DNA from: Bugula neritina
Taxonomy: Eukaryota > Animalia > Bryozoa
Assembly: GCA_964035545.1 (NCBI GenBank)
Contig: OZ037768.1
Coordinates: forward strand, 19,947,700-20,011,699
Direction of reading: 5' to 3'
Length of the DNA: 64,000 bases
The notes below the pieces were generated by a model. The model had not been told where the DNA came from and searched no databases. It saw only the letters and a program-made list of their open reading frames with translations. The position numbers and the translations under genes were made by a program. Below, in pieces: positions 581 to 63,824 of the stretch (positions are counted from its first letter, which is position 1; each line of letters begins with the position of its first letter).

Positions 581-3500
581 CTGTGAACAACACCTGTCTG
601 TCATCCGATCTCAGGCTGTCCCAGCTGATCTCCTCCGCTAATGTCTCTATCCAACGGATACCCTCCTACTCCTACACTGGTTATGGCCTGCCTGCTTCCT
701 GTGGAAAAGATAAGATTGGCGTTTCTCCTAATGGCACATACGTTCCGTATGAGGTGCTCTCTTGCATGTAAGTACCTATTAGTAACATATACAGCATGTA
801 AATACCTGTTAGTAATATATACAGCATGTAAATACATATTACTAATATATACAGCATGTAAATACATATTACTAATATATACAGCATGTAAATACATATT
901 ACTAATATATACAGCATGTAAATACCTATTAGTAATATATACAGCATGTAAATACCTATTAGTAATATATACAGCATGTAAATACATATTAAAAATATAT
1001 ACAGCATGTAAATACATATTAGTAATATATACAGCATGTAAATACTTGTTAGGAATATATATATAGCATGTAAATACCTATTAGTAATATATACAGCTTG
1101 TAAATGCATATTAGTAATATATAAAGCATGTAAGTACCTATTAGTAATATATAAAGCATGTAAGTACCTATTAGTAATATATACAGCATGTAAATACCTA
1201 TTAGTAATATATACAGCATGTAAATACCTATTCCTAATATACACAGCATGTAAATACCTGTTAGGAATATATAAAGCATGTAAGTACCTATTAGTAATAT
1301 ATAGCATGTTTAAAGATTCGCATTCAGTTTCTAGACTGTAGTTTGAGTTGAAATGATTTCCTGTACAAGACATGGTAGTCGAGTTCATCTCTTGCCATCT
1401 ATACAACTTGCTTACTAGTTTTATACCATTTATGTAGGCCTTCCACAACTAGCTGGGAGCGAAGTGATGCTGCCAATTCCATCAATGAGTGCATTGCCAT
1501 TGACTCAGCCAATAGGAACCTGGCTCTCATGAGGCCCACCACTCAGAGCTCCACTTCCACAGGAAATGCCAACGTAGCTGTTGACGGTGTGACTAACTTC
1601 ACTTCAGGTGGAGACGTCTATACCTCAACCCTCTCCGCACCAAACCAGTGGTGGCGAGTAGATCTCGGCCTAATTGTTGGACTTACAGATATCATTCTGG
1701 TTTTCCCCAACAATGAAGGTAAGACAACTTCCCTCAACACTATTAGCTAATATTTGCCTAGAGCCATTGGCGAGGGTGCTGTAGTTATCTATGGTGCTGA
1801 AAAACTAAAGTAAGCTTTATTTGTCAGTTATAGATGCAACATTATTAAATATGCTGTCACCAAGTTGTATTAATCATGTATACAATATAAAATATTGCCT
1901 ATTACGTTGTTTTGTTATCAAACTTACATTAAAGATATGGTATTGGTGTGCAAAGTCTTGGTAAACATCAGTTAAATCTAAAAAATGTTATGGAAAGCTA
2001 CAATCTTCACATTGTTATGTTTGAAAATTTTGTATGATTTTGATTACATTTTATCTTCATTCGTGTTGTGTCATGTTTACATGTTGTGTGCTCATAGCCC
2101 TGTACAAGCACACGCACCGAATCCTCGTCCTAACATCAGTAGTGAGGCTCACTGACACCGACCCATCTCCCGACGACTTAGACTGGACAGTCTCCCATCT
2201 CTACTCTCGGATCCCTGACGGCCAGCGTCTCCTCCTTCCAGTTGCACCTGAAGTACCTGCCAGGCATGTGGCACTTCTCTCTACGCTGAGCCAGGGGTTA
2301 GCTTTCCAAGAAGTTGAGGTATATGGGACAGGTGGGTGAAATAAATACAGAACTGAAAAATAATTTGTTACCTATAAGCTACAGAATATACGTAACTTTA
2401 AATATGTTGGAGTGGAGGCAATATTTTTACAAAAAATAAATATATATATTTTTATAACTTATAATTTTTCCTCATGTTTTTACTCACTTCTATTTTTACT
2501 GTAACAGGTTTTAATGATATAAAAAAAAGAGATGTGCTGAATAGTCAGTGGTTGTTAGTGGTTAATGGCGTATGTATTGCTTAGGCCTTAGGTCTTGCGT
2601 CTATATTGCGTCTGTATTTCATAGGCATTTATATTGTGTATGTACTGCGCATGCATTGCATATATATTGTGTATGTATTGCTTATGACCTCATTTAGAGA
2701 ACATTGCCATGTTCAAGCCTACTGTAAGCAGTCTGTACGAAGAATACTGGTACTCTCGGAGAGTTACTGATGATGTCATTGGTGATGAGTACTACTTCAA
2801 GTCTGTTGAAGGGAGTGGCCAGTGGATAATGATTGACTTGTTGGACATGTACTGGTTGATTTCAACTCACGTGTTTCCATCTGGTAATCACTTCCTTCCT
2901 TCAATCTGTTTACAGTGACTCAATTTACCAAATTTTTACTTGATTGGAATGTATGAACTAAATAGCATTTTAATAGTTTGAAAGCATCAGAAGAAGTCAT
3001 ATGTCTTGTTTATCTAGCTTTAATAGTTTTTTTCAAATTGAATAACTGTTTGGTCATTTAGATTATTAGTATGAAGTAACGTATGTATAAGTTCTTGGAA
3101 AAGAGGAAGCTTCTATTTGTAAATTGTAGCTGTTTATATATCCGCTTTCACAAGCCGTGTTAAACTTGTTGTGTTGTATGATACTTTCCTTTATGTGATA
3201 TTTAGTAACATTTAAAGCAAACTATGTCTGTTGCAGAGGAGCTGAACGACGGTGGTAACTTCACTGTGCACGTAACAGCTGACCAGGAGCTGGCCTACTG
3301 GAGTATTAATCCAGCCTCAATGAGGTTCACGTATCACCTAGTTCGCTCTGTCGAGGAAAACCACGTCACTTTCAACAAGACTACTCTAGCTAGAACAGTT
3401 GCTTTTCACTCTACCAGCCCTCTCGGCTTGGCCTTAGAAGAGATTGTCATCTTTGGTGAACAAGTCACCGGTATGTAGACCATCCTCCTCCGGGAATAGA

Positions 3501-10300: not shown

Positions 10301-13300
10301 TTATTAAGGGTTGGACAACTGACAAACTGTTTAATCTGCAAGAACCTTTAGATGGTATGAAAAATTAATTTCTCTCGTGTCATACTTTTAGAGAATCAAA
10401 CAAACTCGGAACTTCAACTGCTCTCAACCATCATATGTGGTGAAGAGTTGCCCCCTCGTGCTAATGTCAGTCTATGGAAAACTCTTAATACTACTACACC
10501 TCCAGTAGATTCTACTGTATTAAGATATGACTACCCTCTCAGGAGTGTCTACTCTTGTAAATTGGCTATAGTTTCAGATTATGGCAGGATTCAACTGAGT
10601 GAAATTGGTATCTATGGATATGGTAAGGCATGAGATGTAATAACTACACTAACGTATTAAAAGATGGTAGCTGCATAAACTTTTGTAAATTTTGTTGAAG
10701 GCACGTGTAATATTTCTTTTTCATTTTTGCAGTCTATTTGAACCTATTTTAGGCCAATGTCTTGTCTAATGCAATGTTATCAGTATAACTTTTTAAATTC
10801 AAGGAACATTTTAGCTTCTGTTGTTTTTCACTTTGTCAAATTTTCACTACATAAGTTGCAAATTCTTGCTTTGTAGGAAATCTTATTACAAATGCTGCAT
10901 TCAACAGTAGCAGCTCCGTTGACAATGCTATTGCAGCTAATGTTGCTGATAGAATAGCCATTTCAACCAATCCAAATACATATTTCCAATCTGCTGATGT
11001 AAGTGTCCAATGGCTAGCCATGTACCTTCGTGATAGATACTTTATTCTGGATATTGTGCTGGCAGTCAATGGTAAGCATCGGTCATACTTGGTTTTGCAT
11101 TTGCGTGTGATTCCGTATAAAGATATATTTTATTGTAGTTATTGTAAAGTTTACAGAGAGAGGTAATTTTAAGTATTTGCTTGGCATGTAAACAACCTTT
11201 TGTTAATTTTTTTAGGGACCAATTTAGCGGTTTCTAGTTTAGCAGTGATCACTGATCACTTGAAACATTGAATTTCCAAACTCATGAGGCATACTTTTTT
11301 CAATTATACTTACTTTTAAGCTCTATATGCTCAAATGACAATGATCTAGCTTATGGATCCTTTATTCCAATTTTTATTTAGATCGAAATTGTTTAAGTAT
11401 TTTTGGGAACATAATATCCAATCTGGCAGCCACACATGCTTTATCACATGTATGTAGGTCTCATCATTTAAATGCTTTTCATAACTGAAGTATTGTTGTT
11501 TTGTAGAAGAAACTACAGCAAACATCTCTCTCTTCTACAAGCTGGATATAGATACTTCAGCTATTTATGAATCAGGAAACAGTATGTGGACTGATATTGG
11601 TTCCTTAAGTGTAGACTCACCAAATGTTCTGATAGTCAGTCACCCTGTGGATGTGTTTGCTAGTCACCTGGCTGTGGTTGGACAGAGTCATCATAGTCTT
11701 ATTATTAATGAGATAATGGTGTTTGGTTACACTCTCAGTAAGTCATAGCTAAATTGTGATTTGTTTGGCTGTTGCTTTAGTTGAGCCTATTTTACTGTGT
11801 CGGCTGATCAAATTTGTTCAGCACCTCATCATTTTATTATAATATTATGAATATCTTACAAATTCAATGAGTCAGAGCTGAGTGTTATAACATTGTACTG
11901 ATCTGATTTTTTGTTCATTTACAACTCAACTTATGTTACAGAAAACTTTGCTGGTGATGGTGAGACTATGCAGAGTTCAGAAGAATTGGTGGGAGTAACT
12001 GGAGCTGAGAATGCAGTTGACGGTCTGATATTTGATGAAAGTGTTTATTCTCAAACAGAATCAGGTGGACATCAGTGGTGGAGAGTGGATCTGTTGGCTT
12101 TACACAGAGTTTATTCCATTGTCATTTACTCTAGTCTGGAGGGTAAGTGGTTGTTTCGTTTTATGTTATTAGTGACCTGGCTAATTGCTTCTGCAGAATT
12201 TGCATCATTGTCGTGATAGTATATATCTAGTAGTTGAAAGTTTTGTAGTTGTCTTGTTTAACTGTAGCATTTTATTTCAGGTTCTCCAGCATCCAATATC
12301 CAAGTGATGGGTAGTCAAGGTGTAACTGCTGCAAACCCACATCTGTACAAAAATACATGGGCTATAAAACTATATAATGGTATAGCATTTGTATCTCCAT
12401 ATCGTGCCGTTCACTTGGACCAATCCAAACTACTCCGTCATGTTGCTATACTATCTGAAAAGGATGTTGGCTTACTACTGACTGAAGTAGAGCTCTTTGG
12501 AAATGGTAACCTTTTGTAATTTATGTTAAAGTTTGAAGATAATAAGTTGGAACTTTTCAAGTACACAATATTTTTATAAAAGTTATATAAATAAATAATG
12601 AAATATTGAGTTCAATTTCTAGACCTGCTAACACCCATAGTCAATAGTACTTTTTAATTTTTACTTTAAAGGGTTTTTCAGTAAATAGTTCAACTTGATT
12701 CAATTGAGTTGTCTTGCATTGTCCTCAAAATTATTATCTTGCATCGACTTTCTAGAATACAGTCAAAGGAAATGGTTAGTCTTTTTGATATCAATATTTG
12801 ACTATTTATTCTTCAAAAGCTTTATTGATTCAAGTGAAAGCATTTAAAAATTTATAATTCCATCAGCTATCAATGTCATTAAAGCTTTTTTAATGCTACT
12901 GACTATTGACTCATTATGTTTTTTTGATGGGCATCAACTACATGTATTACTAGTAAAAGTAGAGGCATCACTTGCAACATTTTGCTTATGCAGAAATATT
13001 AAGAGAGTGCAAGATTGTACTTCACCACCCATGTAAAGTTACTTGTTGTTTGTTTGTTCCAAAATTCGGGCTCATCTTCTTGAGTTTTAGTTATAAGCTG
13101 AGTTGTTTGGAAGGCCTACATTAGTTAATGATTCTGAAGACGTACTTTGAAGAAGATTTTTCTGGTGTGCCAAAATTTAATTTTGAAACTTCTTGTCACA
13201 CAATGAAGCAAAGAGTCGAAGGTTAAGAAAGTTCAATTGTATAATTTTAGATCACTTTGATATAGAATTATTTGATTTTAGATAACACCTGTGTTTTCAA

Positions 13301-16300
13301 ATTTGGTGAAGAAAGCTACGCTAATTTAGCTGAAGATGTTACGGACTTTAGACGCAGATATCCTGGAGATTCCTTTAAACTAAAGTGTCCTCAGTCTATG
13401 TCAATTGTTTGTCCCAACTGTTCAGCTACAGTGAAATGCTCTCTGAATGTTGATGGTAGTACTGGTGTATTTGACATGTTCTGGAATGTAACAGAAGAAC
13501 AGAAACTCTACTGTCAAGGTATCATGACTCATTCTTTTACTAATCATGTTCTGCTGGTTTAATTGTAATTATTATAGCAAATTGTCTCTTAATAATACAG
13601 TGAGGATTTAATTTCGCTGTCATGTTGTCTATCAAACAATATTTATATTATTATATCTTACTGATTATCATGTAAATGATGGGTTTTTCAATTCCTTAGA
13701 TCATGTGATTTGTGATCCCAAGAGCTTGAACTGGTCAGAGATGGGTTTACCAAGTTCTGTGGAACCACTCAGTTCTGTGGATTTTGTTTTATCTGGTACT
13801 AAGTTGTCTTACCAATGTGGCTCTGATAAGATTGGAGTATCTGCTAGTGGAAGGATGTTGATGTCCGGATCAATTGTTTGCAGGTAAATTTTTTAGGGAC
13901 TCGTTACACAGACATCAACTCTCAATATTAAATAAAATTGATAGCATACAATAAGATACAACTAGATACATGAGTGTCCTGTTTCTAGTTCTGAAGGATT
14001 ATGGATTGCTGGTGACCCAGAGAACACAATTACCAGCTGTATTAATCGTACCACATCGGAAATTAACCTGGCTATTAATAAAACTACAGACATTAGTTCC
14101 ATCTCATCTGGGAATCTTTCATATCTCGTTGATGGATTATTTGATACTTCTGGAAGTTCTGTTGAGATTCTGTCTACAGACAGTGAAGCTAACCAGTGGT
14201 GGAAGATTGACTTATTTGCTATATATGGTATCCGTGAAGTCATTCTCTATGCCTCTAATGGTAAGGCTTCATGCTTACATATAATGAACTACAGAACACC
14301 TGATAAAATGTTAGTGTAATTCTGTAACACCTTTCATATTCAATTTCTAGACACACTGCACACCATTCAACAACTACACATACTGACATCTGTTGCCACA
14401 TACCCTGACAGTGTACCTTCAGTTAATAGTGATTCATGGAGCTCAATGTATATATATGATGGCCCGCCCACACATTGGGTTGTCAATGTGCAGTTTACAT
14501 ATAGAGCACCTGCTAGGCATGTCGCTCTGTTGTCTCTATATGATGAAGGATTTGGTCTACAGGAAGTGGAGATTCTTGGGACAGGTTAGTAAATCTTGGT
14601 ATCACTGTACGGTGTTTGTTATTCTGAAATATTTAGTAACTTCATTAATATAAGCAGCTTGCTTTTCTTGTTTGACTTTGCCGAACCACCAACTAACGCT
14701 TAAATATGAATTCTAAGGTGTGGTTGGTGTCTGCAATATTTTTTGCATTTCAATTCTTTGTTGTAGAAAACCTGGCTGTAGGCAGAGATTGTTCGTACAG
14801 TCCTGGTCACTCTACAACTGGCACTGTACGTTATGCCGTTGATGGGAAGATTGGTGAAGGCATGATTTTCATGTCCCAGGGCGATGCTATGTGGATGATG
14901 GTTGATTTGTCTTCTGTATTCAGATTGAGTTCTGTTCACGTTTATCATTACGGTGAGTGACTGTTTGTAAATTAGATTGAGTGACTGGTGTAGTGTTAAA
15001 GTTGAGTTATAGTATTGTGTGTTGAATCATAGTAGTATTATAATAGTATTTTTAACGGCCTACTAGTTAAAGAATTTGCTATTTTTATTAGTTAGATCAT
15101 TAATTTAGAATTGTATACTTTAGAGCTTTGCATTTATCTTTTAAACTAATAATTCTGACCTCTGTATTTCATATAGAATGCAATATCTTAACACGACATA
15201 ATGTGTTGTTTTGTATATCTTAGGCTTTGATTTTGCCAACATTTCTCTCTACACCACCAACATATTGGCAGCAGAACTCTGGGGATTGGATCCAACGCAA
15301 CATGCAGATGTTTGGTCAAGTGGTTATTTTATTCAATCAACAAATGCACATTATGCCGTGTTTGATGGAAGGATTTTAGCACAAGGATTAGCTCTCTATG
15401 GAATGACCAACTCCGAACTTGTTGTTGAAGAGCTTGTTGTCTTTGGAGCACCGTTATCAGGTAAAACCTTTGCTAAATAATATTCTGGTAAATTGCTAAT
15501 AGTTATTTATACATTTTGGTGGATTTTTCTACAGACATATTATTTAGGAACCATAATGTCACTAGAGCTAAAAGTTTGCTAGCACCACATCGCTAGATAA
15601 GATGTGCATGAAATTCGAAGCGCTGATGACCAGTAGGCAATTATCTTCAATATTAGATGCAGCTCTAGAAATCTCTGAAAAGTTGAAATAAGTTACAAAA
15701 AACCTGACATTCCCTCACCTTTTAGTATCTGGGTGCAACGCTTATCACAGTTTAGCAATGACCATTGAGGTCATATTAACATTCAAGAATTAGTAGATGA
15801 AAAACAAATCAAGAGTACAATGCAAACTAAGATAAATGTTTTTTATTTTAATACTGGAATAGCAGGCTGTCTCTAGGTCCAAGTTTGTGCTCAAACTTTA
15901 CAATTACAAGCAACTGATGAAATATTTTTAATGTAACAGTATTCGGCATTTTCCAGTCAGTTTTGCATTTATCTAATTCGCTTGGTCTACCAGTCTTGAC
16001 TGCAATTTAGTCATAAGTTTATTCATTTTCTCAGAGAATCTGGCAACAAACAAGGAAACATATCAAAGTGTGATGCAAGGAGAAGGCAACTCTTCATTAG
16101 CTATAGATGGAGATATAATGACTGCCTCCAGCACGCAGCCTGGCACCGACCAATGGTGGCAACTGGACTTGGGCTCCAACAATTTAGTTAAGCACATCGC
16201 CATCTTGTTTAATCATGGCAATTATGGTGAGTGTAATTAGAATGTAAAGTTGCTTAATTTAGGAAAATATTATTGGGTGATGAAATCTATATTTAGGAGC

Positions 16301-49300: not shown

Positions 49301-52300
49301 GCTTTTTTGTAATAAATATATAAAGCATGCTTTCTATTATTAAGTTTAATCTCTATGAATTATTTATAACGCAGCAAAATGTAGACAAAAAATATGCTTG
49401 TTGTTATTTATGGAGTGTGTTTTTAGTTTAATCTCTTGATATATTGCATATGATATAATAAACTCTTGCGGCAAGTTCAAGGTTTATAAAATAGAGCACT
49501 TTTCTGCCATGCGTAAGAATAGATATACTATCATTGAATAGTCACTTGTCCTATTTTTTTAGATACAAATTGTGGTCTACCTCCAAGAATCTATGGTTTA
49601 GACTGTACAAATAACATACCTATAGAGTTGAACTCAGAACATCAGAAGTTTCCCAACAGTACGAGAATAGAATGTTCATGTCTTGCTGGTTTTGAACCAG
49701 TTAATATCACTCAACTTATCTACATGACTTGTAATGGTGAAATTGGTGAATGGGTTCTTTCCTCCGTCAACCCATGCATCTGTAAGTTGCAACATTGTTA
49801 ATTTTTTTAAACGCTGCTTGCATCCTCTGCTCATACCATCTCATAAGCGTGTTGGTTTATTGAATTGGGGGAGATGGTACAATCCATCAAAGAATTTGAG
49901 CTCTGTAAAAGCAATTTTTACTTTTGTGTCGTGAAATTATTTCTATGTGATCACAAAGTCAATGATACATTCTGATACATTCATAATTTATTGTCCTTTT
50001 TACCATTTCTACTACAAAATTGTGCCTGCAATAGGTGCATAAAACTTTACTTGTTTGTTTTAAAAACAAACATTATAAGATCATATAATTACAATTATAT
50101 TAAAACTGTCATACATTCAACTCATCATTATGTAAAAAAATTAATCAATAATGGATTTGTGTAGTGATGACTGAAGAAACATGGTCAGCCAACAGTACTC
50201 AACTGCTGTATGCTAAACTAGATGAATATCCAGTGAGAGCTACAGTGTGCAATACTGGGTTTTACATGGATGTGTCATACCCTAACAAACACCTTGTGTT
50301 TGATGTCACACCAGCTGAGGATATTGAAGATACAGAAGTCATATGTCTGCGTATGTTCTGTTTGTAAAAATGATTAAACTTTATGAAAAATGTATTCATT
50401 TTAAAAAGTAATGTCTGAAAATACTTAAAATTAATGCCTGAAAATACTTTGTTCAGTTTACTGGATTTTATTATTGTCATAATTTGCACCAATACTATAA
50501 TGTGTTTCTTTGAATAGGTTCTGACACAATAATAATACATTGGTAATTTAGGCATTTATTCAAATAAGATCGGTGAACACAGTTACTCTTCACTGTATAG
50601 TGCTGCACTTTCATTTTAATTGATGTTGTAATGTGCAGCTGGTTGTGATATCAATGACATACTCTCCATGGACACCAATCTCACTGCCGAACCTCTTAAG
50701 CACTCCTATGGGCCAAACGAAGAACTAGTTGTTAATTGTGGAAATGGTAGAGAACTATCTGGGCTAGAGAGTAAGTTGGTCATGAGATATTGTTTTATTA
50801 TGTTACTTCATTTGTTACAAAAAGTATTTTCATATAAGTATATATGCATTAGCTTTGTGCTATTATTTTGTTTTTCTATCTCATTGCACAGTCTGGGAAA
50901 GAATTATAAAATGTGTAAAAGTTGAAGTTTATGATGTCCAAACTGGCGGTAATGTGACAGAACTGAGATGGAGTGATCTTCCTTCAGGATTTAATTGTAC
51001 AGGTGAGACTCGTTAGATGTTTTACGTTCAATCTCTTACTTCTGGTGTTGATGTTACTTATGGAGTAATTTATATTTTAAACATTTGTTATGCATTTGTT
51101 TAACTATTTAGTTTTAGCCACTTTAAACCTGGCTCTATGAACTGCAAACACTACTTTGTGTTATCATGATGTTTTAAACCAATAATTGATGCTATTAACT
51201 TTTTCAGAGTCTGTAAATGATTCAACACCTGTTCCAGCTGGCATCAAGTGAGTTTATATTTCATGTAATCATAATAATTTGCTTTATATAATTGATTGAA
51301 AACATGTATAGTGACAAATGCTTGCCTCAAAATTGCTGAAGATGTTATAAAAGATCAGATTTCAATGTCCAACTTTCGTCATTTTGTAGGAAATTTGAAC
51401 CAATTATATATGCTGGTAAGATGCTTTTCATTATTGTTGCTCTGCAAAAGCTTCTGGGTTTTGCTTTCGCTACTGGTTTGTACCAGTGATCCATGATTAA
51501 AGTTCTATAGTATAATGAACTAACTACTAATTTATTGAAACTGGTATATATTTGTTACTGTAGGTGACATAAAGCTGGCTATTGTATCGGTTGGCGATAT
51601 AATGGTTAGTTCTAGCGGAGAATACAGAAGTCAGCTGGTTGACTACAGGCTGGATTACATTTGGCAATCACAGGCAACTCACAATCAATGGGCCATGTTG
51701 AATTTAAGAACTTTCATCTCTGTTATCACTGTTCGACTTTTCTTCCCAAATGAAAATGGTTAGTCTTTCTATTTTCTCTGTCAATCACATTCAGTTTTCT
51801 AGTGTTTTAGCTCAAATCACTGTTTGGATCATTTTTTAGTGTCAACTATTGCTTTAAGTCTTACTTTTGTATTTTATACAATGTTCAGTTGCACATGAAC
51901 TTTGCCTTTTTTGTAATTACTACACTATTAGGGATACCAAAAATTGAGAAGTTGTCTATTCTATCTACACTCTCCTCCAATGATCAAACACCCGATTTTG
52001 ATGATGGCTTCTGGGTAAAACACTTCTACTCGGAGCAACCAATCGTTGGTGACACGAAAGACTTCAACTTTGATGTTGGAACTGTTAGATGTTACAAGAT
52101 AGCTCTGCATTCAAACAGCTCCCAGGGACTTGCCTTAAGAGAGATTCAAACCTACTATTTAGGTATAGATAAACTGCCTGACACTTGCCTGTATCCATAG
52201 TCTATTTTGAAACCTTTAAAAAATCTTACTTTACGATAGTTTTTGATTGCGCATGTCTCCCAATCAATTATTTTTTATTTTCAGCTAATCTGCTTCATAT

Positions 52301-55300
52301 CAACTCTACGGCTGTTAGTAGCACCTCAGTTGAAAATTCTACTGCGAAAAATGTTATCGATGGAGTAGCTGTTACATCAGATCGTAATTCCTATTTTAAG
52401 TCTTTGGCTGGGAGACACCCTTGGCTAGCTTTGTATCTTGGTGATCGATATTTCTTGATAGACATCGCATTGGTGATGAACAGCAATGGTGAGTATAAAG
52501 TATAAACACGGTTGGAGTTTGCTTGAAAAGTTACAGACAAACCAAACGCACACACACACGCACACGCACACGCACACGCACACGCACACACACACACATC
52601 TTACTAATATTTTTATTCATATGTTTTAGATGTAACTGGTACAAACACCTCTCTCTTCTACAAGCTGGATATAGATACTTCAGCTATTTACGAATCAGGA
52701 AACAGTATGTGGACTGATATTGGTTCCTTAAGTGTAGACTCACCAAATGTTATGATAGTCAGTCACCCTGTGGATGTGTTTGCTAGTCACCTGGCTGTGG
52801 TTGGACAGAGTAATCGTAGTCTTATTATTAATGAGATAATGGTGTTTGGTTACACTCTCAGTAAGTCATAGCTAAATTGTGATTTGTTTCGTTGTTTTTA
52901 TAGTTTAGCCTATTTTACCGTGTCGGCTGATCAAATTTGTTCAGTACTTGATCATTTTGTTATAACAATATTATGAATATCTTACAAATTCAATGAGTCA
53001 GAGCTGAGTGTTATAACGTGTTACTGATCTGATTTTTGTTCATTTACAACTCAACTTATATTACAGGAAACTTTGCTGGTGATAGTGAGACTATGCAGAG
53101 TTCAGAAGAATTGGTGGGAGTAACTGGAGCTGAGAATGCAGTTGACGGTCTGATATTTGATGAAAGTGTTTATTCTCAAACAGATTCAGATGGACATCAA
53201 TGGTGGAGAGTGGATCTGTTGGCTTTACGCAGAGTTTATTCCATTGTCATTTACTCTAGTCTGGAGGGTAAGTAGCTGTTTCGTTTTATGTTATTAGTGA
53301 TCTGGCCAATTGCTTCTGCAGATTTTGCATCATTGCGGTGATAGTATATATCTAGTAGTTGAAAGTTTTGTAGGTTTCTTTTTCAATTATGCCATTTTAT
53401 TTCAGACTCTCCAGCATCAAATATCCAAGTATTGGGTAGTCAAGGTGTAACTGCTGGAAACCCACATCTGTACAAGAATACATGGGCTCTAGAGTTATAT
53501 AATGGCATTGCATTTGTATCTCCATATTTCGAACTTCACCTGGACCAATCCAAACTACTTCGTCATTTTGCTATACTATCTGAAGAAGATGTTGGTTTAC
53601 TACTGACTGAAGTAGAGCTCTATGGAAATGGTAGCTCTATCTATATCACATTTACAGTGAAATGTTTTTACTATTACTCTATATTGATATTTTTAGGTTG
53701 ATACAATGTTGACATAGCGCTTTATGTTATTCAGCTTCGGGCACATAACATTCAATCTTCTGACTGCATGCTGAACGCTATGTTAATAGTTACGTGTAGA
53801 TTACAATTAATGTATTCTTAGGCTGCACTACAATGTCAATGTATCCTTTTTCAGTTTGAAATTATTCAATTTTAGATAACGCCTGTGTTTTCAAACCTGG
53901 TGAAGAAAGCTACGCTAATTTAGCTGATGATGCCACAGACTTTAGACGCAGATATCCTGGAGAGTCCTTTGAACTAAAATGTCCTCAGTCTATGTCAGTT
54001 GTTTGTCCCAACTGTTCAGCTACAGTGACATGCTCTCTGAATGTTGATGGTAGTACTGGTGTATTTGACATGTTCTGGAATGTAACAGAAGAACAGAAAC
54101 TCTACTGTCAAGGTATCATGACTCATTCTTTTACTAATCATGTTCTGCTGGTTTAATTGTAATTACTATAGCAAATTGTGTCTTAATAATACAGTGAGGA
54201 TTTAATTTCGCTGTCATGTTGTCTATCAAACAATTTTTATATTTTTACATCTTACTGATTATCATGTAAATGATGGGTTTTCAATTCCTTAGATCATGTG
54301 ATTTGTGATCCCAAGAGCTTGAACTGGTCAGAGATGGGTTTACCAAGTTCTGTGGAACCACTCGATTCTGTGGATTTTGTTTTATCTGGTACTAAGTTGT
54401 TTTACCAATGTGGCTCTGATAAGATTGGAGTATCTACTAGTGGAAGGATGTTGATGTTTGGATCAATTGTTTGCAGGTAAATTTTTTAGGGACTTGTTAC
54501 ACAGACATCAACTTTCAATATTGAATGAAGTTAGGTGCATACAATAAGATACAACTAGATACATGAGTGTCCTCTTTCCAGTTCTAAAGGCAAATGGATT
54601 GTTGGTGACCCAGAGAACACGATTACCAGCTGTATTAATCGTACCACATCAGAAATTAACCTGGCTATTAATAAAACTACAGACATTAGTTCCATCTCAT
54701 CTGGGAATCTTTCATATTTTGTTGATGGATTATTTGATACTTCTGGAAGTTCTGTCGAGATTCTGTCTACAGACAGTGAAGCTAACCAGTGGTGGAAGAT
54801 TGACTTGTTTGCTATATATGGTATCCGTGAAGTCATTCTCTATGCCTCTAATGGTAAGGCTTCATGCTTACATATAATTAACTACAGAACGCCTGATAAA
54901 ATGTTAGTGTAATTCTGTAACACCTTTCATATCCAATTTCTAGACACACTGCACACCATTCAACAACTACACATACTGACATCTGTTGCCACATACCCTG
55001 ACAGTGTACCTTCAGTTAATAGTGATTCATGGAACTCAATACATGTATATGATGGACCACCCACACATTGGGTTGTCAATGTACAGTTTACATATAGAGC
55101 ACCTGCTAGGCATGTCGCTCTGTTGTCTCTATATGATGAAGGATTTGGTCTACAGGAAGTGGAGATTTTTGGGACAGGTTAGTAAATCTGAATACAGGTT
55201 CAGGTATGCTAATACCTCTTAATTTCTACAGAGATTCGATTTACTAAATTTGGTATTAAGCTGTGAAGTTGTATTGATTTGTGGTGATTATTTTATAGAG

Positions 55301-58300
55301 AATCTTGCTATTTCGAGACCAACAGCAACTAGCAGCGTGTCAGCACATAGCTTCTTCGCCGTTGATAGTTTCATTGGGACTTATGGGCTTTTTGCATCTG
55401 AACTTGGCGAAGGACAGTGGTTTATGGTGAATTTGGTGAATCAGTTCTATCTCGGATCTGTCTTTATTTACACCAATGGTTTGTATACATTCAACACTAG
55501 AGCTTACTCTCATGTTTTTTATGTTTATACTTTGTATTTACTTTGAATTAAAGATATCTTTTAAATTGATTAACCTTGCTGCACACATTTTAAAAAATAT
55601 GTAATTTGTTTAGAATTATCTATGGATGATGCTATTCTCTACACACTTGATGAGTTGCATCCAGAACACTGGAATGTTGATCCTTCTTTATGGCCAGATA
55701 ACGTCACCGTCAGCCAATATTCAACAAGTGTTTACTATGTTGTACTCAACAAAATTTTAGTCCAAGGGTTAGCTGTTTACAACAATTTGGAAGATAGACT
55801 AGTTATAGAAGAGATTGTAGTTTTTGGATTTCCACCTTCAGGTAATGAAGCCTTTCCTATACTTTTCATGCTGATTACAAACCAAATTGAGCCAAGAAAC
55901 TGTTAAGTCAATGTTCACTTGATCTAACTACTTTGATGACAATTTTGATGACATTTTTCCTTAGCTATGTGTATGGTATCGAACATCGGCCTGTCCTTAC
56001 CCGAGTTGGATGTAGAGAACAGACTTTTACTTCAAAACATGAGTTTTCTGGAGCCCGGAGAAGAATTATCTGTTTCTTGTGCCAGCGGCAAAAGTCCAAA
56101 TATCACTCAACTGAATCAGCCATTTGTTGAAAACATTAAATGCCGGTATGTTCCTCTAAATTTGCGTTTATACCTCTACTGAAAAATTTTCCAAGTTCCA
56201 GTTACTAACACTTGTCCGAGTACCCCTTTATAGTCAAACTGAAAATCGTTGAAATCATATTGAGGCGGAAAGCTTGCTTTCTAAAATTGAAATCTGACTC
56301 GCATAATCGTTATTTGTTGCCCTTTCTTTAAACGTCGTGAATTATTGAAGCTGACAGCATAGGCGATATAATTATTAACATATATAAGTGCGTCGTCTAA
56401 TCACCAAAGTCATAACTGAATAAAGATGTTTACAGGGAGTTATTACTTCTATTCTGAAATCGGCCGATTAAGTTATCACAATACAAAAGTTTCTACGTTT
56501 GGCTTTTACAATGCAATGCAACCCTGAGAAATGTCAACCCCGCCAAATTGAATTTCTTACCTAAAATCGTAACGGTATAAAGGCAACTTAAGTGTCAATT
56601 TCAGTAAATTTTTCATTAGCAATTGTCGTGGATGCCATCCTTTATTTAATATACTAACATCGTGATGAACTCATTTGTTAAAAATGCTATTGCTTTAAAT
56701 ATTCGCGAGCATAAATCGATTGAAATTTACTTGATTTTCATTATGTTTTCCTTTGTTTGTCATCAACCTAAATTTATAATAGAAGAGTACATCAATAACA
56801 GTGACCTTGTTATGTGAGTTCTTTATTATGTGAATCTCTAATTTTTTCATATTTCAAGTGGAAATAATGTGTGGCTCAGAGGAGAACCGGCCTTAAAGTA
56901 TGAATGCATGGGTAAGATATGTTTAATGGTTACACACTCATCTGTATCGTATGATGAACTCATCCATTCTTTTGTGATTTGAATTTCGTAAGTTTCGATG
57001 CACTACTGCTGGGATTATTATTGACTGTATAAAGTTTAGTTATTTAACAAACCCTGCTTTCTTCATTAAATTTATTTTTATCTACTAATATGGACTGGTA
57101 ACATTTTTGGTTTGAAACTGATCATTTGTTTATCATAAATGAGAAAGCTTCTAGCAACTTATCAACTTATTGCCTTACTCCTTTATAGTGTTTATGTGAA
57201 GCCTGTGCCCTCAATAGTTTATATCCATTTATAGATATAGCCTGTGAACCACCATCAAACGGTTCACTGTACGAGTACTCTGGTAATGTCACAATAGATA
57301 ACTTGATACCTTTAAATCAGACTCTACTGCTAACATGTGATAATGGAATATCATATGAATCTCAGTGCAATAAAAATGGCAATATGAGAATTGGACAGTG
57401 GATTCCCCCTCTCACTTGTGGTATGTTTTTGCAATATTCTTTTAAATTTTATAATAGTCACTCGAAATTAGTTTTGGCGCTTAGTCATAAGAGTCAATAA
57501 TTTAAAATTTAAATGTCATATGCGTTATTTACAGAAAATCAAACCTGCAGCTATAACCAGCAGCCATCTGTTTGGGGCGAGGAACATGAAAAGAATAGAG
57601 AATATTTGGCAAGCAATGACAGGTTGTTGGTTGGAGAATCGGCTACATTCCAATGTTCAGAAGCTTACGTTGGTCAGCCTGCTCAATATACTTGTACTGT
57701 GTAAGTAGGATCTCCTAAAACTATAGCATGTGAAGTTTTTCTTACTTGTGGTTGTCGTCATTAACTGCCAATTTTGTATCTTGTAGTAACGCTCACGGCA
57801 ATGCAGAATTTCAACCCAAATCCGATGAAACGGTTCCACTATGCAGAGGTATGTTTTCTTCAAGTTTTAATTCATGTGAGAAGTGTTTTTGCAGAATGCT
57901 CATGATAATGCATAATTGCAGTCCATTTCGAATGAAGTGATTCCAACGTGCAATAGTGAGTTATTTCTAAGTTTTAACTTAATTTATAGTTTATGTGTAT
58001 CGAGGTATTGTTTACTAGCCAAAGCCAAGGTGTGTATTTTGTAAATAAATAGTTTTTCTGCATGTTTTACCCACCTTTAACAGAAATACGCTGTCAAGCA
58101 CCTGCTATAAGTACAGAAGGTCATATAACATACAGTCAAACACTTGACTGGGAGTGTCATCAGAATGGAGGTTCTTGTCAACTAAATGAAAGAGTTAAAG
58201 TCTTCTGTTCACATGATGATACGACTCCAACTCATCATTTCTGTCAGTTATCAGATAACAACACTGCTCAATGGTTTCCTTTGCTCTCTTGTGGTGAGAT

Positions 58301-61300
58301 ATACTTCGTCTATAATTATTTATTCATGCTTGAAAGAACACAGCAAGTTGCTTGGGCGCGATGTAGATTAGAAAAGTTGCATGCAAAATTAAATGAACAT
58401 CAATGAACACGTTGCCACTAACATGTCAGTCGGTAGCAAAACAAACTTATTTATTCACGCTTGAAAGAAAATAGCATTATTAGATTATAAGAAATGCATG
58501 CAAAAATGAATGAACATCAATGAACACATTGGCGCTCACATGTTAGTTGCCTGCAAAAAAAAATTTCTCTACGATTTTGACCAAAAATAGATAAATATAG
58601 GTAGCTGTAGCATCTTGACATTTTATCAAACTTATTCTGTTCATGGAAATTGTTTTGCTCATGGTACATGATATTAGGTAGATGATTCATTTCATTGACT
58701 TTGATTTGATTACTGCTGACTTTCAATGAAGAGTTTTCACACTAAAAGGCTGAAATGCTGAATAACAGAATTATGTATGTATTTTTGTGGTTGCCAGCAA
58801 ACTACAATTTCTTTGTAACTGACAAAAACTAAAAATCTGGCTAAAGTGTTTTGGCTAAGGCATCTTGACTGTGTTATCTAAATTTTATATTTATAGAAAT
58901 TGTGTTGCTTTTGGTACACAAACTTTGTTAGCCAATTCACGCTATTGAATTTGATATGCATAATAGTTACTGCTGATTTTTAAATGAAAGTTTTCATGTT
59001 GAGTAACTGAAATGTGTAATTTTAGAAAACAAGGAGTTATCCTGTGGAATTCCTGGTGATATCTTTGGTATGACATGTACAGGTTCAACTTTGTCAGCTG
59101 ACACTCCTGACTGGCAGCGTTACCCTGATGGCACAGAACTTCCTTGTAGTTGTCAGTCTGGATTTCATCAAGGTGAGTAAAACTGGGACGTATTTAACTA
59201 TAACAAATATTCATTGAGTAACTTGCACTGTGGTTTTTGATCGAATGGCTTTTCAACAATCTGAATTTGTTGCAATTTCTTTATTTTTAGTTTCTGAAGA
59301 GCCAATCATTGTATGTAATGGGACAAGCAGGCAGTGGACACCAACATATGGAATGCCTTGCATTGGTAAATATATTGAAGACTCCTGCTTAAGTGTTTTC
59401 AATCATATGTAAGCAGTATTATATTTTACTTGCTTTATTTTGCACCCGATTCCTGTTTGTGCAGCTGATACCAACCTGTCAAACCTAACAGAAGATTCAA
59501 AGTCGCAGCTAATCAGTTTAGACAATGGACTTCATCTACTTGTGGAATGTAATGAAAATAGCTCCATGTCACCATCTTATCCTTCTAGAAGGGAACTTCT
59601 TGAGGTTCAGAATTTGACAGATTCTCCTATCAACTGTTACAGTAAGTGAAGTTATTAACTTGCAGCTGAAGTAATACTGGATGTTGATTATGGAATACTT
59701 TTATGTCTTCATGTTTACAGTTTCTATAAATGTCACCAACTTTTAATTTATAGCCGGATGCCAAGCAAATGATATAAAGTCAGCAATTCAATATTCGCGG
59801 TTAATTCCTCATCACCATGTTTATTCTATTGGAGCTGAAGTTGTAATAGGTTGTCAGGAGGGGAAAGCAATAGACAATGAATTTGGTAAATACTTTTGTA
59901 CATTAGCTTATGGAAGATATTGTGCATATTGTGTATTATATTATGTGTAATGTAGATATTACATTAGAACAATATTGTGTTTATTGTTTCTTAGGCTATG
60001 TTGTTGCTAAATGCGAGCTGACTGCAAATCAAGCAGTTGAATGGTCATTTCCTTCTAACCTGTCTTGTAAAAGTAAGTTTTTATGTTCTTTGATTTCATC
60101 AACAAAATATGAATTCCGCATATAAATTACTCTTGAATCATTCCAACTGTTTCTGTTGTTGAGTTAACATTATTATTTTTTAGACTTCATATTTCATTCA
60201 TCATCAACAACAACTTTAAGGAATCACAAGTAAGTTAGAGAGCAATTGTGTTATATTTTTATGTATATAGTTGATTTTGTGTATATAATTTTGATTTTTC
60301 TATTATTCAGTCACATAATTTCTCTGTCACATCTTACAAGTTTTTAGTTCATATGTTGCAAAAGTTTATGACTCTTTGGTATTTGTAGGAACCTTGGGCC
60401 ACTGGAGTATTCAGGTCTGTTGGGTTTATTTTATTATCTCCTCGTGTCTGTAATAAAAGTAGATGAAGATGCAGTTTCTTATTAATTAATTTTCGCAACA
60501 AAAGATATCTTTTTAATTAATTCTTTCTTAGTCTAAAGTTTGCTCCAACCTTATATCCTGTTTACAACTGTTTCATGGTGTGTAACCTTGAAAAAAACTT
60601 TTCTCTATAAAATTAAAACTACAAAAATATGCAGATTTTGATGTGTGTAGTACATTTCATAGACAAGTTAACAAAGATAGCTATCCAAGTAGAAGTCAGT
60701 TCAAATGCCGGTCATAAAAACAGACTAACCGACACTGCTCTGAGCAACTCCTGGGTTTCTGAAGCTACTTCACAACAATGGCTTATGGCAACATGGACTG
60801 GGATATATACTGTAACCGTTATTAGACTCTATTTACCAGGGATACTAGGTAAATCAGTTAATTCATAAACCAGTGGATGTTTTACAAGTAACAATAGTAA
60901 CCTTCATGTTTCAATTATATTTCTACATGCAACTTTGATGTTATAAACGAATACTATAATGGTTTATTGACCTTTCGTGTTATGTCCTGCACACTTGTGT
61001 TGTAGCGAACATTCATGTGATGTCCACGATGGTATCCAACACCACAGACCCACCTTCTATAAACAGTAATAGTTGGTTATTAGATGAATACATAGAGGGT
61101 GCATTTACACAGAATATTACAGACCTCCACTATGATGTAGGAGATATAGTGGGATACGCCGTAGCTCTTCTGTCTGGATACAGTGAAGGGTTGGGAGTGA
61201 AAGAGCTAGAGGTTTATGGCATTGGTGAGATCCAAACTAATTTGGTTATACATTTGAATATTGTTCATCAACAGTACTTTATAAGCAGCATAGAAATTGC

Positions 61301-63824
61301 AGATCCATTTTTTTCCAGTTTAAGTTGGCAATTTTCAATTAAATGTAGTGCTTTCTGGTAGTATAATATGTTAGTATTGTAGGTAACCTCTTAACTAACC
61401 AACATTCCGTCTCATCTAAGAGTGGAAATCCGAACCTTGCAGTAGATGGATTGTTAGTGAGAGTTCCAGAAATTACATCTGTATTCAGATCAGATCCTGG
61501 TCTGAATGAGTGGTGGTCTGTGTTTCTTGGAGATGTCTACCAGATTGGTGTTATATCTGTCATCAACACTGACAATGGTGAGATTGAAGACCTTGTTTTC
61601 ATAGACTTGTGTCTGTACATATCAATATTTACTACTTTCTGTGCTGTATTACACATCAGTCATGACGATCTTTAGTTCATGTTCTGAATAGAATTTTAAA
61701 CTAATTGTTTTGAGTCATCGTTTAACTGAATCGATATTGATATATACACAGCTTATATGTTTAACTGTGCTACAAACAAATGTCAAACAATAAAACTAAC
61801 AAACTTGCATTTTTAGATCTAGGCCTGCCGATAAGGATTCTGCTAGCCATAAAAACCAATGATTCTTGGAATGAAGTTCATGTTCAGGAGAGACCAGTTT
61901 TACATGCAATGGTTCTGAAATTTTCTCCTACAATCAGTGCCTCACACATTGCTCTGTTACATGCAGGAAATGGAACTTTGGTTATAGAAGAGGTCTTTGT
62001 TATTGGTTACAGACTAGGTAAATGTTTTTACCATAATCAGTTTTAACACGCATTGCTGTACCATGAGAAATATTACTCCTGTTTAATGTATGCATTTAAT
62101 GGCATAAAATTTGTAATTTACCTGTATAGATGACTACACTGCATTACCGACTACCACCATTCAGCCTGGAACACATGGAAATACAGTTTGGTTGACAGTC
62201 AACTTGGGGGTTTCAAGACGAGTTTACTCTATCATTGTCTTTTTCGATAGCTCTAGTAAGTGGACAGTTTCTATGTTTTATTTTTTTTCTTTTCTGGTTT
62301 TTATTTTTTTTTTGCAGCTATTTAAGTCAGGTGCCAATATTCATTGCCCACTGGATATATATGTTGAACGGTTTATTGATGTCTATATATACCACATCAT
62401 GCTCTATGTTTGTACTCTACTTTATTGTTGATTATATTTAATTAATCTTTCCTTGAATTGAAAATTTAAAAAATATAAAGAGAGCTAGCTGTATGGAACT
62501 TGTGTGTTGTGTTTGTAGATTCTCCTAGCAGTACAGCTGATGTGCATGTACTAACATCTCAAGCTAAATCTATTAAGAACATTGTATTGGTGAATGACCG
62601 AGTCTGGTCGAGAAGATCTTTGGAAAAACTTAGAGCTCCATATGGAGTTGTGTCACTGAGTCCTCCTCAGTATATTCAACACGTTGCTCTACTCACAGCT
62701 TCTGATAGTAACTTACGAATTTCTGAAGTGATGGTTCTTGGAAGAGGTTAGTGAAGTATTCTGTATGTCAATATCAATATTTAGAAACTGATATTTTGTG
62801 TGTTGCGCTTGTAAACTGAGTAAAGCTTTTGTGATTTGGGCAAAGTGTCACAATCCTTTGCCTACCCTAGTTGTTCTCTTGCATTTTATATGTTGACTTT
62901 TTAAGCAAGTTGCTGTGTAACAGAGGTATATTGTATTGTATGTTCTGTTTCTAGGACAAGGGTGTATGTTTAAAACTGGTATGGAGAATTTTGCTTCCTA
63001 TGCTGAAGATAACTTTGACTTGAACAACAGGCATGTTGGTAGTAGTTTTAATCTGGATTGTAAATCAAAACTATGGCAGAAGAAGTGTGAAAACTGTTCC
63101 TCAAAAGTATTCTGTGTGTACGAGATTGGCAGTGATGGAACCAGCTTTGATATGGTGTGGGATGTGACTGAGCAGCAGAAACTCTACTGTAGAAGTATGC
63201 CTCTACTTTTAATCTCAATTCTAACATCAAACCAATCAATACAGTATTTATTTTAACAAGTTCACATGTTGTAGTTTTCAAAAACTTCTATGTTTTCAGA
63301 TTCTAGTGTATGTCTGGTCAGTGATATTCAGTTCTCTGCTATTTCTCTTCCTTCTCACTTTTCTATAAGATCTGAGGCTGAGTATATTTTTCCCGGAGAT
63401 TCTATTTCTGTCTATTGTCCTGATTCATCAGCAACACCACGTTACACACTGCTTTGCTCGTAAGTTTATTAATAAAGTGTATCCAATTACCTGCTATTAT
63501 AAGCATTTAATTAAACTGCTACATTTAATACCTATTATGTTATACAATGCAGGTCTTCATTAACATGGCAACTGGAATCAAATTTCTCGATGTCTTGTCC
63601 ACAAGAAGACATGACTGGCAAGAACTTGGCTTCTTTGGGCTCTGCCACTCAGAGTTCAATATCTCTAGGAAGTGCTGATGTAGCGATTGATGGTGTATTT
63701 AATTTTACTAGAGGTGTTGACGTGTACACAGCAACTTTGTGGGCACCTGACCAATGGTGGAAAGTAGATCTTGGTCATATCATTGCACTATCTCAGGTCG
63801 TCGTCGCCTTCCCTTATGATCAAG
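581..63824 (+). CDS. Giant multi-exon gene (partial at both ends): extracellular F-type-lectin-like / sushi(CCP)-like super-repeat protein, about 156 exons, at least ~8,900 aa
   Basis: Every exon has a pyrimidine-rich AG acceptor and a GT donor. Phases chain (mostly 1-1, with 1-2/2-1 pairs) without an in-frame stop across the window. Recurrent motifs NLA..K...QSS...A..AVDG...QWW.VDL / ARHVAL...L.L.EVEVYG and C..P...C...C...W.P..C. No intergenic gap, start or stop between units. Confidence 0.85.
764..1309 (+). repeat. 30-bp intronic minisatellite, ~18 copies (GCATGTAAATACCTATTAGTAATATATACA)
   Basis: GCATG recurs at 764, 794, 824 ... 1034, 1066 ... 1276, 1304. Confidence 0.97.
4905..9483 (+). 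CDS. Unit 1: cluster of ~6 sushi/CCP-like domains plus one 2-Cys domain
   Basis: Exons 4905-5100, 5364-5413, 5888-6067, 6413-6587, 7131-7189, 7298-7498, 8031-8165, 8294-8374, 8803-8988, 9110-9247, 9388-9483; Cys/Trp spacing such as CQPP...C.NG...C...WIPPLDC. Confidence 0.75.
6571..6846 (+). repeat. 18-bp intronic minisatellite (TACGTCTGCACTGTGTAA) with ~95-bp higher-order repeat
   Basis: Repeated gtctgcactgt cores; GAAGTGAAAG variant at 6631, 6726 and 6821. Confidence 0.95.
9934..13518 (+). CDS. Unit 1: linker, three FTP-like domains and a 6-Cys sushi-like domain
   Basis: Exons 9934-10194, 10392-10622, 10877-11071, 11507-11737, 11942-12142, 12281-12505, 13282-13518 (ENAVDG...HQWWRVDLL; LLRHVAIL...TEVELFG). 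Confidence 0.82.
11520..14596 (+). repeat. ~3 kb segment duplicated/converted with 34390-36960 and 52640-55190
   Basis: Exons and most introns are near-identical among the three copies (e.g. intron 13519-13699 vs 54113-54292). Similarity starts inside exon 11507 and ends just after donor 14585. Confidence 0.88.
13700..17696 (+). CDS. Unit 2: sushi-like domain plus three FTP-like domains
   Basis: Exons 13700-13883, 13989-14260, 14351-14584, 14767-14952, 15224-15460, 16035-16226, 17484-17696 (NLATNKETYQS...LAIDG...QWWQLDLG). Confidence 0.83.
19393..23277 (+). CDS. Unit 2: sushi/CCP-like cluster and two linker micro-exons
   Basis: Exons 19393-19591, 19789-19841, 20026-20211, 20458-20623, 20813-20871, 20971-21180, 21539-21685, 21805-21879, 22131-22307, 22430-22561, 22669-22746, 23052-23097 (46 nt), 23252-23277 (26 nt). 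Confidence 0.77.
23510..26318 (+). CDS. Unit 2: three FTP-like domains (third with shortened N-half) plus 6-Cys sushi-like domain
   Basis: Exons 23510-23695, 24091-24309, 24474-24668, 24928-25152, 25265-25390, 25619-25852, 26079-26318. Confidence 0.82.
25980..26004. repeat. Poly-C tract (~24 nt)
   Basis: Direct reading; the paralogous position (~62865) has only CCC. Confidence 0.9.
26687..29365 (+). CDS. Unit 3: sushi-like domain plus three FTP-like domains
   Basis: Exons 26687-26846, 26937-27208, 27439-27672, 28036-28224, 28340-28558, 28737-28925, 29147-29365 (NLALGKPTAMRST...LAVDG...QWWMVDLE). Confidence 0.85.
29579..33234 (+). CDS. Unit 3: sushi/CCP-like cluster and two linker micro-exons
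   Basis: Exons 29579-29771, 29979-30022, 30163-30348, 30445-30610, 30805-30863, 31044-31244, 31488-31706, 32019-32204, 32546-32677, 32800-32910, 33048-33087, 33209-33234. Confidence 0.78.
33378..35901 (+). CDS. Unit 3: three FTP-like domains plus 6-Cys sushi-like domain
   Basis: Exons 33378-33572, 33730-33960, 34083-34286, 34380-34610, 34815-35015, 35134-35358, 35665-35901. Confidence 0.83.
36072..37622 (+). CDS. Unit 4: sushi-like domain plus two FTP-like domains
   Basis: Exons 36072-36255, 36361-36632, 36723-36956, 37080-37259, 37395-37622. Confidence 0.83.
37746..41642 (+). CDS. Unit 4: sushi/CCP-like cluster and linker micro-exons
   Basis: Exons 37746-37926, 38129-38181, 38325-38510, 38643-38808, 38897-38958, 39194-39403, 39771-39917, 40034-40108, 40702-40878, 40991-41122, 41223-41300, 41412-41457, 41617-41642. 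Confidence 0.78.
40164..40690 (-). mobile_element. Truncated non-LTR retrotransposon (LINE; CR1/L2/Jockey-like) ORF2 C-terminal fragment, frameshifted
   Basis: Minus strand reads DINLNWCAHINSLRTQLNKVTGMIYLASKFLPYKALILLYNSLINSKLTYCLEAWG...LLLIQKRIIRII, then after a frameshift TYLTR...WNKLPLTLR...SFATFK, typical of the post-RT region of LINE ORF2. Absent from the paralogous intron 59366-59464. Confidence 0.88.
41888..44589 (+). CDS. Unit 4: three FTP-like domains plus 6-Cys sushi-like domain
   Basis: Exons 41888-42073, 42231-42449, 42595-42789, 43044-43268, 43381-43506, 43757-43990, 44350-44589; close paralogs of 23510-26318. Confidence 0.82.
44832..53630 (+). CDS. Unit 5 (recent duplicate of unit 3): sushi, 3 FTP, sushi cluster, linker, 3 FTP
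   Basis: Exons 44832-44991, 45082-45353, 45581-45814, 46131-46319, 46436-46654, 46793-46981, 47180-47398, 47550-47745, 47946-47989, 48141-48326, 48423-48588, 48878-48936, 49069-49269, 49563-49781, 50165-50350, 50639-50770, 50892-51002, 51208-51247, 51390-51415, 51564-51758, 51932-52162, 52285-52488, 52630-52860, 53067-53267, 53406-53630. Confidence 0.82.
52546..52598. repeat. (CA)n/(CACACG)n microsatellite
   Basis: Direct reading; the paralogous intron (~34330) has only a short acacac seed. Confidence 0.95.
53876..63194 (+). CDS. End of unit 5 (6-Cys domain) and unit 6 (recent duplicate of unit 4)
   Basis: Exons 53876-54112, 54293-54476, 54582-54853, 54944-55177, 55299-55478, 55614-55841, 55965-56145, 56859-56911, 57235-57420, 57535-57700, 57787-57848, 58084-58293, 59026-59172, 59291-59365, 59465-59641, 59754-59885, 59995-60072, 60184-60229, 60389-60414, 60663-60848, 61006-61224, 61383-61577, 61817-62017, 62130-62255, 62519-62746, 62955-63194. 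Confidence 0.82.
56160..56588. mobile_element. ~429-bp non-autonomous DNA transposon (MITE), PIF/Harbinger-like
   Basis: Imperfect 15-bp TIRs (ATTTGCGTTTATACC / GGTATAAAGGCAACT, 13/15 match) flanked by TAA duplication (56157-56159, 56589-56591). The empty site cccTAAgtgtc is present in the paralogous intron at ~37935. Confidence 0.82.
63300..63824 (+). CDS. Start of unit 7 (third copy of the unit 3/5 type); gene continues beyond window
   Basis: Exons 63300-63459 and 63553-63824 are paralogous to 26687-27208 and 44832-45353 and end at a phase-1 donor. Confidence 0.82.

Follow-up and report, generated by a model that had tools for sequence, protein, structure and literature searches.

The window analysed here, a stretch of 64,000 nucleotides on chromosome 4 of Bugula neritina, lies inside what we read, on balance, as one gene, present as a single copy, for a giant membrane mucin with a GPI anchor. 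The full gene model has 201 exons in 88 kb and encodes 13,464 aa, a polypeptide of ~1.48 MDa. A predicted signal peptide is followed by a long folded array, in which F-type lectin-fold domains (FTLDs) alternate with sushi-like cysteine modules, then by a Thr/Ser-rich tandem repeat and a short hydrophobic tail.

Gene model and spliced RNA

An independent exon-chain model, trained on eight exons picked by eye, iterated and curated against the repeat copies, places exactly 156 GT-AG exons at positions 581-63824 of the window. They comprise 26,796 coding nt and 8,932 codons with no stop, in agreement with the initial annotation of the window (about 156 exons in one frame, at least ~8,900 aa). The plus strand scores 3,135 (in-sample) and the minus strand 475; the GC content of the window is 30-40%. 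Exon boundaries were fixed by the repeat copies, and nineteen weak micro-exon calls were removed or merged for want of support from any repeat copy. The earlier description of the array as open at both ends is true of the window only. Extension beyond it finds a signal-peptide-like start, a GPI-type hydrophobic tail and a stop codon: the start codon lies at -977 from the window start (~1 kb upstream) and the stop at 87,170 (~23 kb downstream of the window), while array-related exons end at about -530 and +79,100 on the same count. No stop or frameshift is found across the 201 exons. The introns have a median of 182 nt and a maximum of 1,696 nt, and 170 of the 200 are in phase 1. The intron after exon 4 (window 764-1309) consists mostly of a 30-nt minisatellite in about 18 copies. 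Only two strong hydrophobic stretches are seen in the hydropathy profile, at the N- and C-terminal ends of the model, and a motif scan of all 13,464 residues finds no R-x-K/R-R (furin), GDPH or RGD site. Upstream, on the same strand, the neighbour (L007:137-4574) is, as judged by eye, aldo-keto reductase-like, of the L-galactose/L-fucose dehydrogenase type.

Part of the model is seen in RNA. Short contigs from two RNA-type runs of one sample (the run is labelled 'symbiont metagenome') were aligned at 90% likeness, and they carry GT-AG joints at modelled introns across 34,078-39,403. These joints run over the end of unit 3 (34078-35358), cross the unit 3/4 junction (35358/35665) and the following intron (35901/36072) and continue to 39403. 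The joint at 35901/36072 is the copy of the intron at 13518-13700, one of the unit junctions named in the initial annotation. A third, DNA-like run has none of the modelled splice joints. Among the loose RNA ends are matches to exons that are specific to unit 2 (the start of exon 32), unit 5 or 7, unit 6 and unit 8, and one joint leads into the start of exon 183. Spliced RNA is found from several units in this sample, and the lack of expression considered in the initial annotation does not apply. Since the RNA comes as short contigs at 90% likeness from one sample and spans no more than ~5.4 kb of the genome, a transcript of full length, both gene ends, the B-type junctions and the mucin exon are predictions of the model. 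In one RNA contig, exon 89 (end at 38510) runs directly into exon 92 (start at 39192), and one whole sushi module is omitted in frame, by alternative splicing or from a deleted allele.

That the units are separate clustered genes, a pseudogene or an artefact of assembly is highly improbable: most junctions rest on the model, with RNA support at the joints named above, and with so many phase-1 introns a continuous frame is easy to draw, but a single signal-like start and a single terminal exon, with no internal start or terminal exon found in the 88 kb of the model, the short introns, the unit junctions spliced across in RNA and the unbroken frame all argue against it, and the repeat copies are 5-15% apart in DNA and therefore not collapsed or duplicated reads.

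Lectin-fold and sushi-like modules in a two-type super-repeat

The gene holds seven units and a shortened eighth. A unit consists of a six-Cys module (X), an S-type module, two or three FTLDs, a seven-module Cys stalk, a short linker and three FTLDs, and is 1,343-1,538 aa long. Units 2, 4 and 6 (A type) alternate with units 3, 5 and 7 (B type); amino acid identity is 81-93% within a type and 35% between types. Self-BLAST of the window gives repeat offsets of about 18, 37 and 41 kb at 84-95% identity. The first of these, 18.0-18.9 kb, matches the ~1,500-aa super-repeat in two alternating types, with a dimer of ~18 kb, that had been proposed.

In the gene model, exons 1-2 (L007:9023-9303), with the start codon and the signal-peptide-like N-terminus, and exon 3 (L007:9465-9701), with the first X module, lie upstream of the window. 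All the following units are on the plus strand. Unit 1 continues in the window with exons 4-27 (581-12505), which encode an S-type CCP, three FTLDs, a seven-module stalk and three FTLDs. Unit 2 (exons 28-54, 13282-25852) has X, S, three FTLDs, a seven-module stalk, a linker and three FTLDs, the final one N-terminally truncated. Unit 3 (exons 55-80, 26079-35358) also has X, S, three FTLDs, stalk, linker and three FTLDs, and unit 4 (exons 81-105, 35665-43990) differs in having two FTLDs before its stalk. Unit 5 (exons 106-131, 44350-53630) is 91% identical to unit 3 in amino acids, and unit 6 (exons 132-156, 53876-62746) is 93% identical to unit 4. Unit 7 starts within the window with exons 157-159 of its exons 157-182 (62955-63824) and runs on to 72601. 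Counted from the window start, the terminal unit 8, with two X modules, S, two FTLDs and a five-module stalk, occupies 73166-79378; the mucin exon of 6,348 nt follows at 79763-86110, and three last exons at 86197-87170 end in the hydrophobic tail and the stop. The remainder of unit 7 and everything behind it are found in loci L008-L010.

In total, the full model has 42 FTLDs in 15 clusters (12 triplets and 3 doublets) and 71 Cys modules, eight of which have two Cys only. The window itself holds 34 complete FTLDs and one front half, as expected from the ~34 F-type-like domains annotated at first. Sushi-like modules are present as annotated, though their number in the window is 55 and not ~48, because the six-Cys X and the degenerate two-Cys modules are included here. 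The heads do come in clusters of 5-6, as two runs of 2-3 FTLDs parted by two sushi-like modules, and sushi stalks do stand between the lectin-fold clusters.

Domain searches and fold predictions were run exon by exon, which for FTLDs means on half-domains: every FTLD is cut once, mid-domain, by a phase-1 intron, as in the pair of front-half and back-half exons at 13989-14584 (plus strand). Front-half exons match striped-bass FBP32 (E 2e-13), eel agglutinin AAA (E 1.4e-6), lectinolysin and CBM32 domains. PF22633 is matched in 13 of 24 front-half exons, and matches to PF00754 are also seen; both fall below the cut-off, as half domains would be expected to. The predicted model of a back half aligns to residues 80-146 of FBP32 with a modest Z of 4.0 (rmsd 2.2 Å over 64 residues), a score equalled by other proteins of this fold, and Foldseek with a back half returns no match at E <= 0.001. 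Trees of the halves resolve only position-specific groups. From these half-domain searches and models, the predicted fold of the FTLDs is the F-type jelly roll of ~140 aa.

The F-type family is defined by the fucose motif H-x24-R-x-D-x4-(R/K) and the cation motif h2DGx (PMC5712786). Neither the fucose-binding His nor the full fucose motif is present in any of the 42 FTLDs, where a single off-position R-x-D is found; run on tandem fucolectins of fish and frog, this pattern recovers 9-11 motifs. The cation-site Asp is invariant in 24 of 24 aligned front halves. DG is kept in 25 of the 42 FTLDs and the strict cation motif in one, and the region is absent from three truncated domains. Most FTLDs have 0-2 Cys. 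With the fucose motif absent throughout, these are F-type folds and not canonical fucolectins; the lectin-fold heads of the initial annotation stand as F-type-fold heads that all lack the fucose motif. The last FTLD of the A-type units (window 25265-25390, 43381-43506 and 62130-62255) begins without the first ~22 residues, including the cation-site Asp, and this truncated form is 90-96% conserved between units. Soluble F-type lectins act as trimers, and by analogy the in-chain triplets may mimic such trimers; the three doublets and the three truncated domains argue against a strict triplet rule.

The X module opens every unit, and its nine copies are all at this locus in a genome profile search. 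The copy at 13282-13518 (plus strand), a six-Cys sushi variant, has an AlphaFold pLDDT of 77. In a structural comparison, the X module finds CCP-containing chains in all its 44 best matches, at low Z (2.4-3.9), and Foldseek with X gives no match at E <= 0.001. Profiles of the stalk match CR1, CR2, C4BP, CD55 and factor H (E 2e-7 to 1e-3). One stalk exon reaches 0.96 to Sushi clusters in the ESM Atlas. A fold search of the ESM Atlas gives no TM above 0.41. In the HMMER/Pfam check proposed for the exons, the lectin fold is recovered below cut-off as described above, and Sushi is not: exon by exon, no Cys module reaches a match to PF00084. The two-Cys 'f' modules are counted as degenerate, and one copy was found to have no Pfam match. 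Of the Cys-module profiles tested, none has a match in the genome outside this locus. Judged from profiles and predicted folds, the Cys modules, the two-Cys 'f' modules apart, are divergent members of the Sushi/CCP family, whose standard module has ~60 aa, four Cys in two disulfides, a conserved Trp/Gly and the CCP fold. The folded array carries 204 N-glycosylation sequons.

The unit copies are under purifying selection (dN/dS between units 0.33-0.52), though values near 0.4-0.5 are fairly relaxed, and with dN/dS below 1 there is no sign of positive selection between repeat copies. Inter-unit identity jumps from exon to exon, and the halves of one FTLD can differ sharply. Units 1 and 3 are 88-92% identical in five exons and 14-54% identical in the remaining ones; in the fifth FTLD of unit 1, identity to the unit-3 counterpart is 46% over the front half and 89% over the back half. 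Unit 1, the most divergent unit by sequence, appears as a patchwork of exons, some old and some recently converted. The history of the array fits unequal crossing-over of a two-unit block together with exon-scale gene conversion: the array would have grown by the former and been reshuffled by the latter, aided by the phase-1 introns.

Mucin stalk, predicted membrane anchor and related proteins

The mucin exon encodes 2,115 aa in 42 repeats of 49 aa (42 x 147 nt). Its composition is 31.5% Thr and 13.6% Ser, with Thr, Ser and Pro together at 51%, and it is strongly acidic (376 Asp+Glu and 41 Lys+Arg). It is a long tandem Thr/Ser/Pro domain of the kind that marks a membrane-tethered mucin. By pattern and hydropathy, the N-terminus is signal-peptide-like, with a Kyte-Doolittle peak of 2.19 at residue 3, and the C-terminus ends in ~19 hydrophobic residues followed directly by the stop, with no cytoplasmic part. 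Signal peptide, small-residue site, spacer and hydrophobic tail are arranged as in GPI-anchored proteins, and the protein is very probably GPI-anchored. The very large extracellular rod or scaffold of the initial annotation is upheld as a giant extracellular chain; a free scaffold does not agree with the mucin stalk and the GPI-type tail.

A front-half profile was searched against 1.84 billion representatives, among which close records may be absent, and the best 150 matches include no orthologue and no protein of the same architecture. They are tandem lectin-fold proteins with up to ~16 whole domains; those that are named come from molluscs, frog, fish and amphioxus. None of the 150 matches the Cys-module profiles of this gene, and Pfam Sushi is absent from the six large lectin matches scanned; the matches P0036 and P0124 were checked with local profiles only. 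The top match, P0001 of Nucella lapillus (KAL8585202.1, 37 stretches), was rejected as an orthologue, having F-type front halves only at ~37% identity; it is probably an incorrect prediction made from a larger gene for a tandem lectin. A protein search with the X module finds only two JGI fragments, from other samples, which keep the exon order with 92-96% best exon identity. A scan of JGI contigs and a search with the mucin exon are blank, which are weak negatives, as near-identical genomes may be missing. No description of this protein, its arrangement or its scale was found in the literature, in line with the earlier statement that it was not recognised as described. The Ensembl annotation of the assembly may hold an unnamed model of this gene.

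F-type-like exons, unlike the Cys modules, are common elsewhere in the genome. Paired front-half and back-half exons cluster, without the Cys modules of this gene, at C5:452,000-516,000 (plus strand) and C8:9,570,000-9,645,000, possibly as further large multi-lectin genes; at C3:7.1-8.1 Mb and C5:1.2-1.5 Mb half-domain pairs at regular spacing suggest tandem gene families. A near-complete COI copy on chromosome 6 (C6:11,174,072-11,175,412, locus L022) is probably mitochondrial DNA inserted into the nuclear genome, and the small contigs C17, C73 and C214 carry further COI genes, which probably come from co-sequenced organisms.

A comparison with known proteins shows which features are shared. 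With eel AAA, striped-bass FBP32 and the Xenopus tandem fucolectins, the protein shares the galactose-binding-like fold and tandem arrays, and it largely keeps the cation-site Asp. It differs in its 42 domains, where described F-type lectins have 1-5 (PMC5712786) and uncharacterised database proteins up to ~16, in the missing fucose triad, in having mostly 0-2 Cys and in its membrane-mucin context. Combinations of FTLD, CCP and S/T/P regions, and FTLDs without the motif, are known: sea-urchin SpCRL has an S/T/P region besides CCP and FTLD, and Drosophila CG9095 has a degenerate triad (PMC5712786). SpCRL, furrowed and CG9095 are alike by description in joining an FTLD with CCP arrays; they have few FTLDs and their own CTLD or FIMAC domains, the fly proteins with a transmembrane segment, whereas the present gene combines a hierarchical super-repeat of eight units with a mucin of 2,115 aa and an end of GPI type. 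In CD55 (DAF), a rod of CCP modules stands on a GPI-anchored, S/T-rich stalk. This layout is shared, and the matches to CD55 and the other RCA proteins (CR1, CR2, factor H) are at fold level only; the present protein is about 35 times longer, with interleaved lectin folds, and its complement likeness is one of fold. The membrane mucins MUC1, MUC4 and MUC16 are also giant, with a tandem Thr/Ser/Pro repeat in one large exon and a surface tether. Here the mucin is membrane-proximal and the folded array distal, no SEA/GDPH site is found, and the end is of GPI type instead of a transmembrane segment with a tail. The lophotrochozoan proteins of Gigantopelta (XP_041360601.1), Nucella (KAL8585202.1) and Babylonia (XP_076447365.1) share many tandem FTLD-like repeats, without matching the CCP modules of this gene, and none is orthologous. 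As this layout builds on known FTLD+CCP+S/T/P and CCP+S/T+GPI proteins, we regard it as a variant and not as a new system.

Possible role at the surface

We lean, with modest confidence, towards a surface brush on an exposed epithelium, which would act as barrier and spacer and whose lectin-fold clusters would bind non-fucose ligands by avidity. Such a tethered glycocalyx brush would resemble a vastly larger CD55 or SpCRL. The signal peptide would route the protein through the ER, and the C-terminal hydrophobic tail would be exchanged for a GPI anchor. The acidic Thr/Ser-rich repeat would be O-glycosylated into a stiff stalk of ~0.5 µm, at the usual mucin extension of ~0.25 nm per residue. Sushi rods would space the 15 clusters of 2-3 F-type-fold domains over a further 0.3-0.4 µm, and the total extended length would be ~0.8-0.9 µm by usual per-residue and per-module lengths. 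The epithelium could be that of tentacle, gut, brood chamber or epicuticle. There the degenerate heads may bind non-fucose glycans, proteins or one another, and so cross-link the coat or keep particles and microbes off the membrane. The protein would be unable to signal alone. The initial annotation had left immune recognition or allorecognition, adhesion, and a mucus or matrix system side by side. Because the protein lacks a cytoplasmic tail, comes from a single locus and is under purifying selection, mucus, glycocalyx or adhesion fits better than immune signalling or allorecognition, and an allorecognition role is less likely.

B. neritina is the host of the bryostatin symbiont. A surface protein for immunity or symbiont handling, either a multivalent pattern-recognition trap or a complement-type regulator like CD55 or CR1, would agree with the CD55-like layout, with the profile matches of the stalk to CR1, CR2, C4BP, CD55 and factor H, and with the combination of CCP, FTLD and S/T/P domains in SpCRL. 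We find this doubtful: these matches are at fold level, no single exon matches Pfam Sushi, and the fucose motif is lost in 42 of 42 domains. The 'symbiont metagenome' label of the RNA run, which might be cited in its favour, is uninformative on function.

A gamete or colony self/non-self recognition protein that diversifies like oyster bindin, by recombination at the mid-domain intron and exon skipping, is unlikely. In oyster bindin, too, an intron splits the tandem FTLDs, halves are chimeric and triad-less variants occur, and the same mechanisms are used (PMC5712786). The mid-domain phase-1 introns, the separate histories of FTLD halves (46% and 89%) and the in-frame skip of a sushi module between 38510 and 39192 are of this kind. 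Bindin has 1-5 repeats under positive selection, however, and here there are 42 with purifying selection on the copies of each position, together with CCP rods, a mucin and an anchor. The missing signalling tail and the conserved exon order of the two contigs from other samples also argue against such diversification.

More ambitious, and quite unlikely, is a micrometre-long single-chain lectin 'bouquet' as the founder of an undescribed class. Its triplets would mimic trimers with a new ligand specificity, and colony-specific combinations of ~19 head types, made by exon conversion or skipping, would recognise symbionts, food or neighbours.

It is improbable that the protein is a shed filament with a structural role in cuticle, larval glue or skeleton matrix, its lectin folds being mere building blocks. 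The regular ~1,500-aa period, the lost sugar sites and the very acidic stalk would suit such a filament, and F5/8-C and sushi domains are present in lophotrochozoan shell-matrix proteomes (PMC13425148). Against it are the GPI-type tail, the membrane-mucin layout and a model that has no cross-linking or polymerising end domain.

As a surface brush, the protein is a concrete candidate for the bryozoan surface coat, of which no molecular description was found in the literature searched. The gene also preserves a clear record of how repeats grew hierarchically, with conversion at the scale of exons. Described F-type lectins have 1-5 domains; the model predicts 42, none with a fucose site, on an apparently unusually large GPI-anchored mucin. 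This allows a direct test of the role of F-type folds after the loss of their sugar site.
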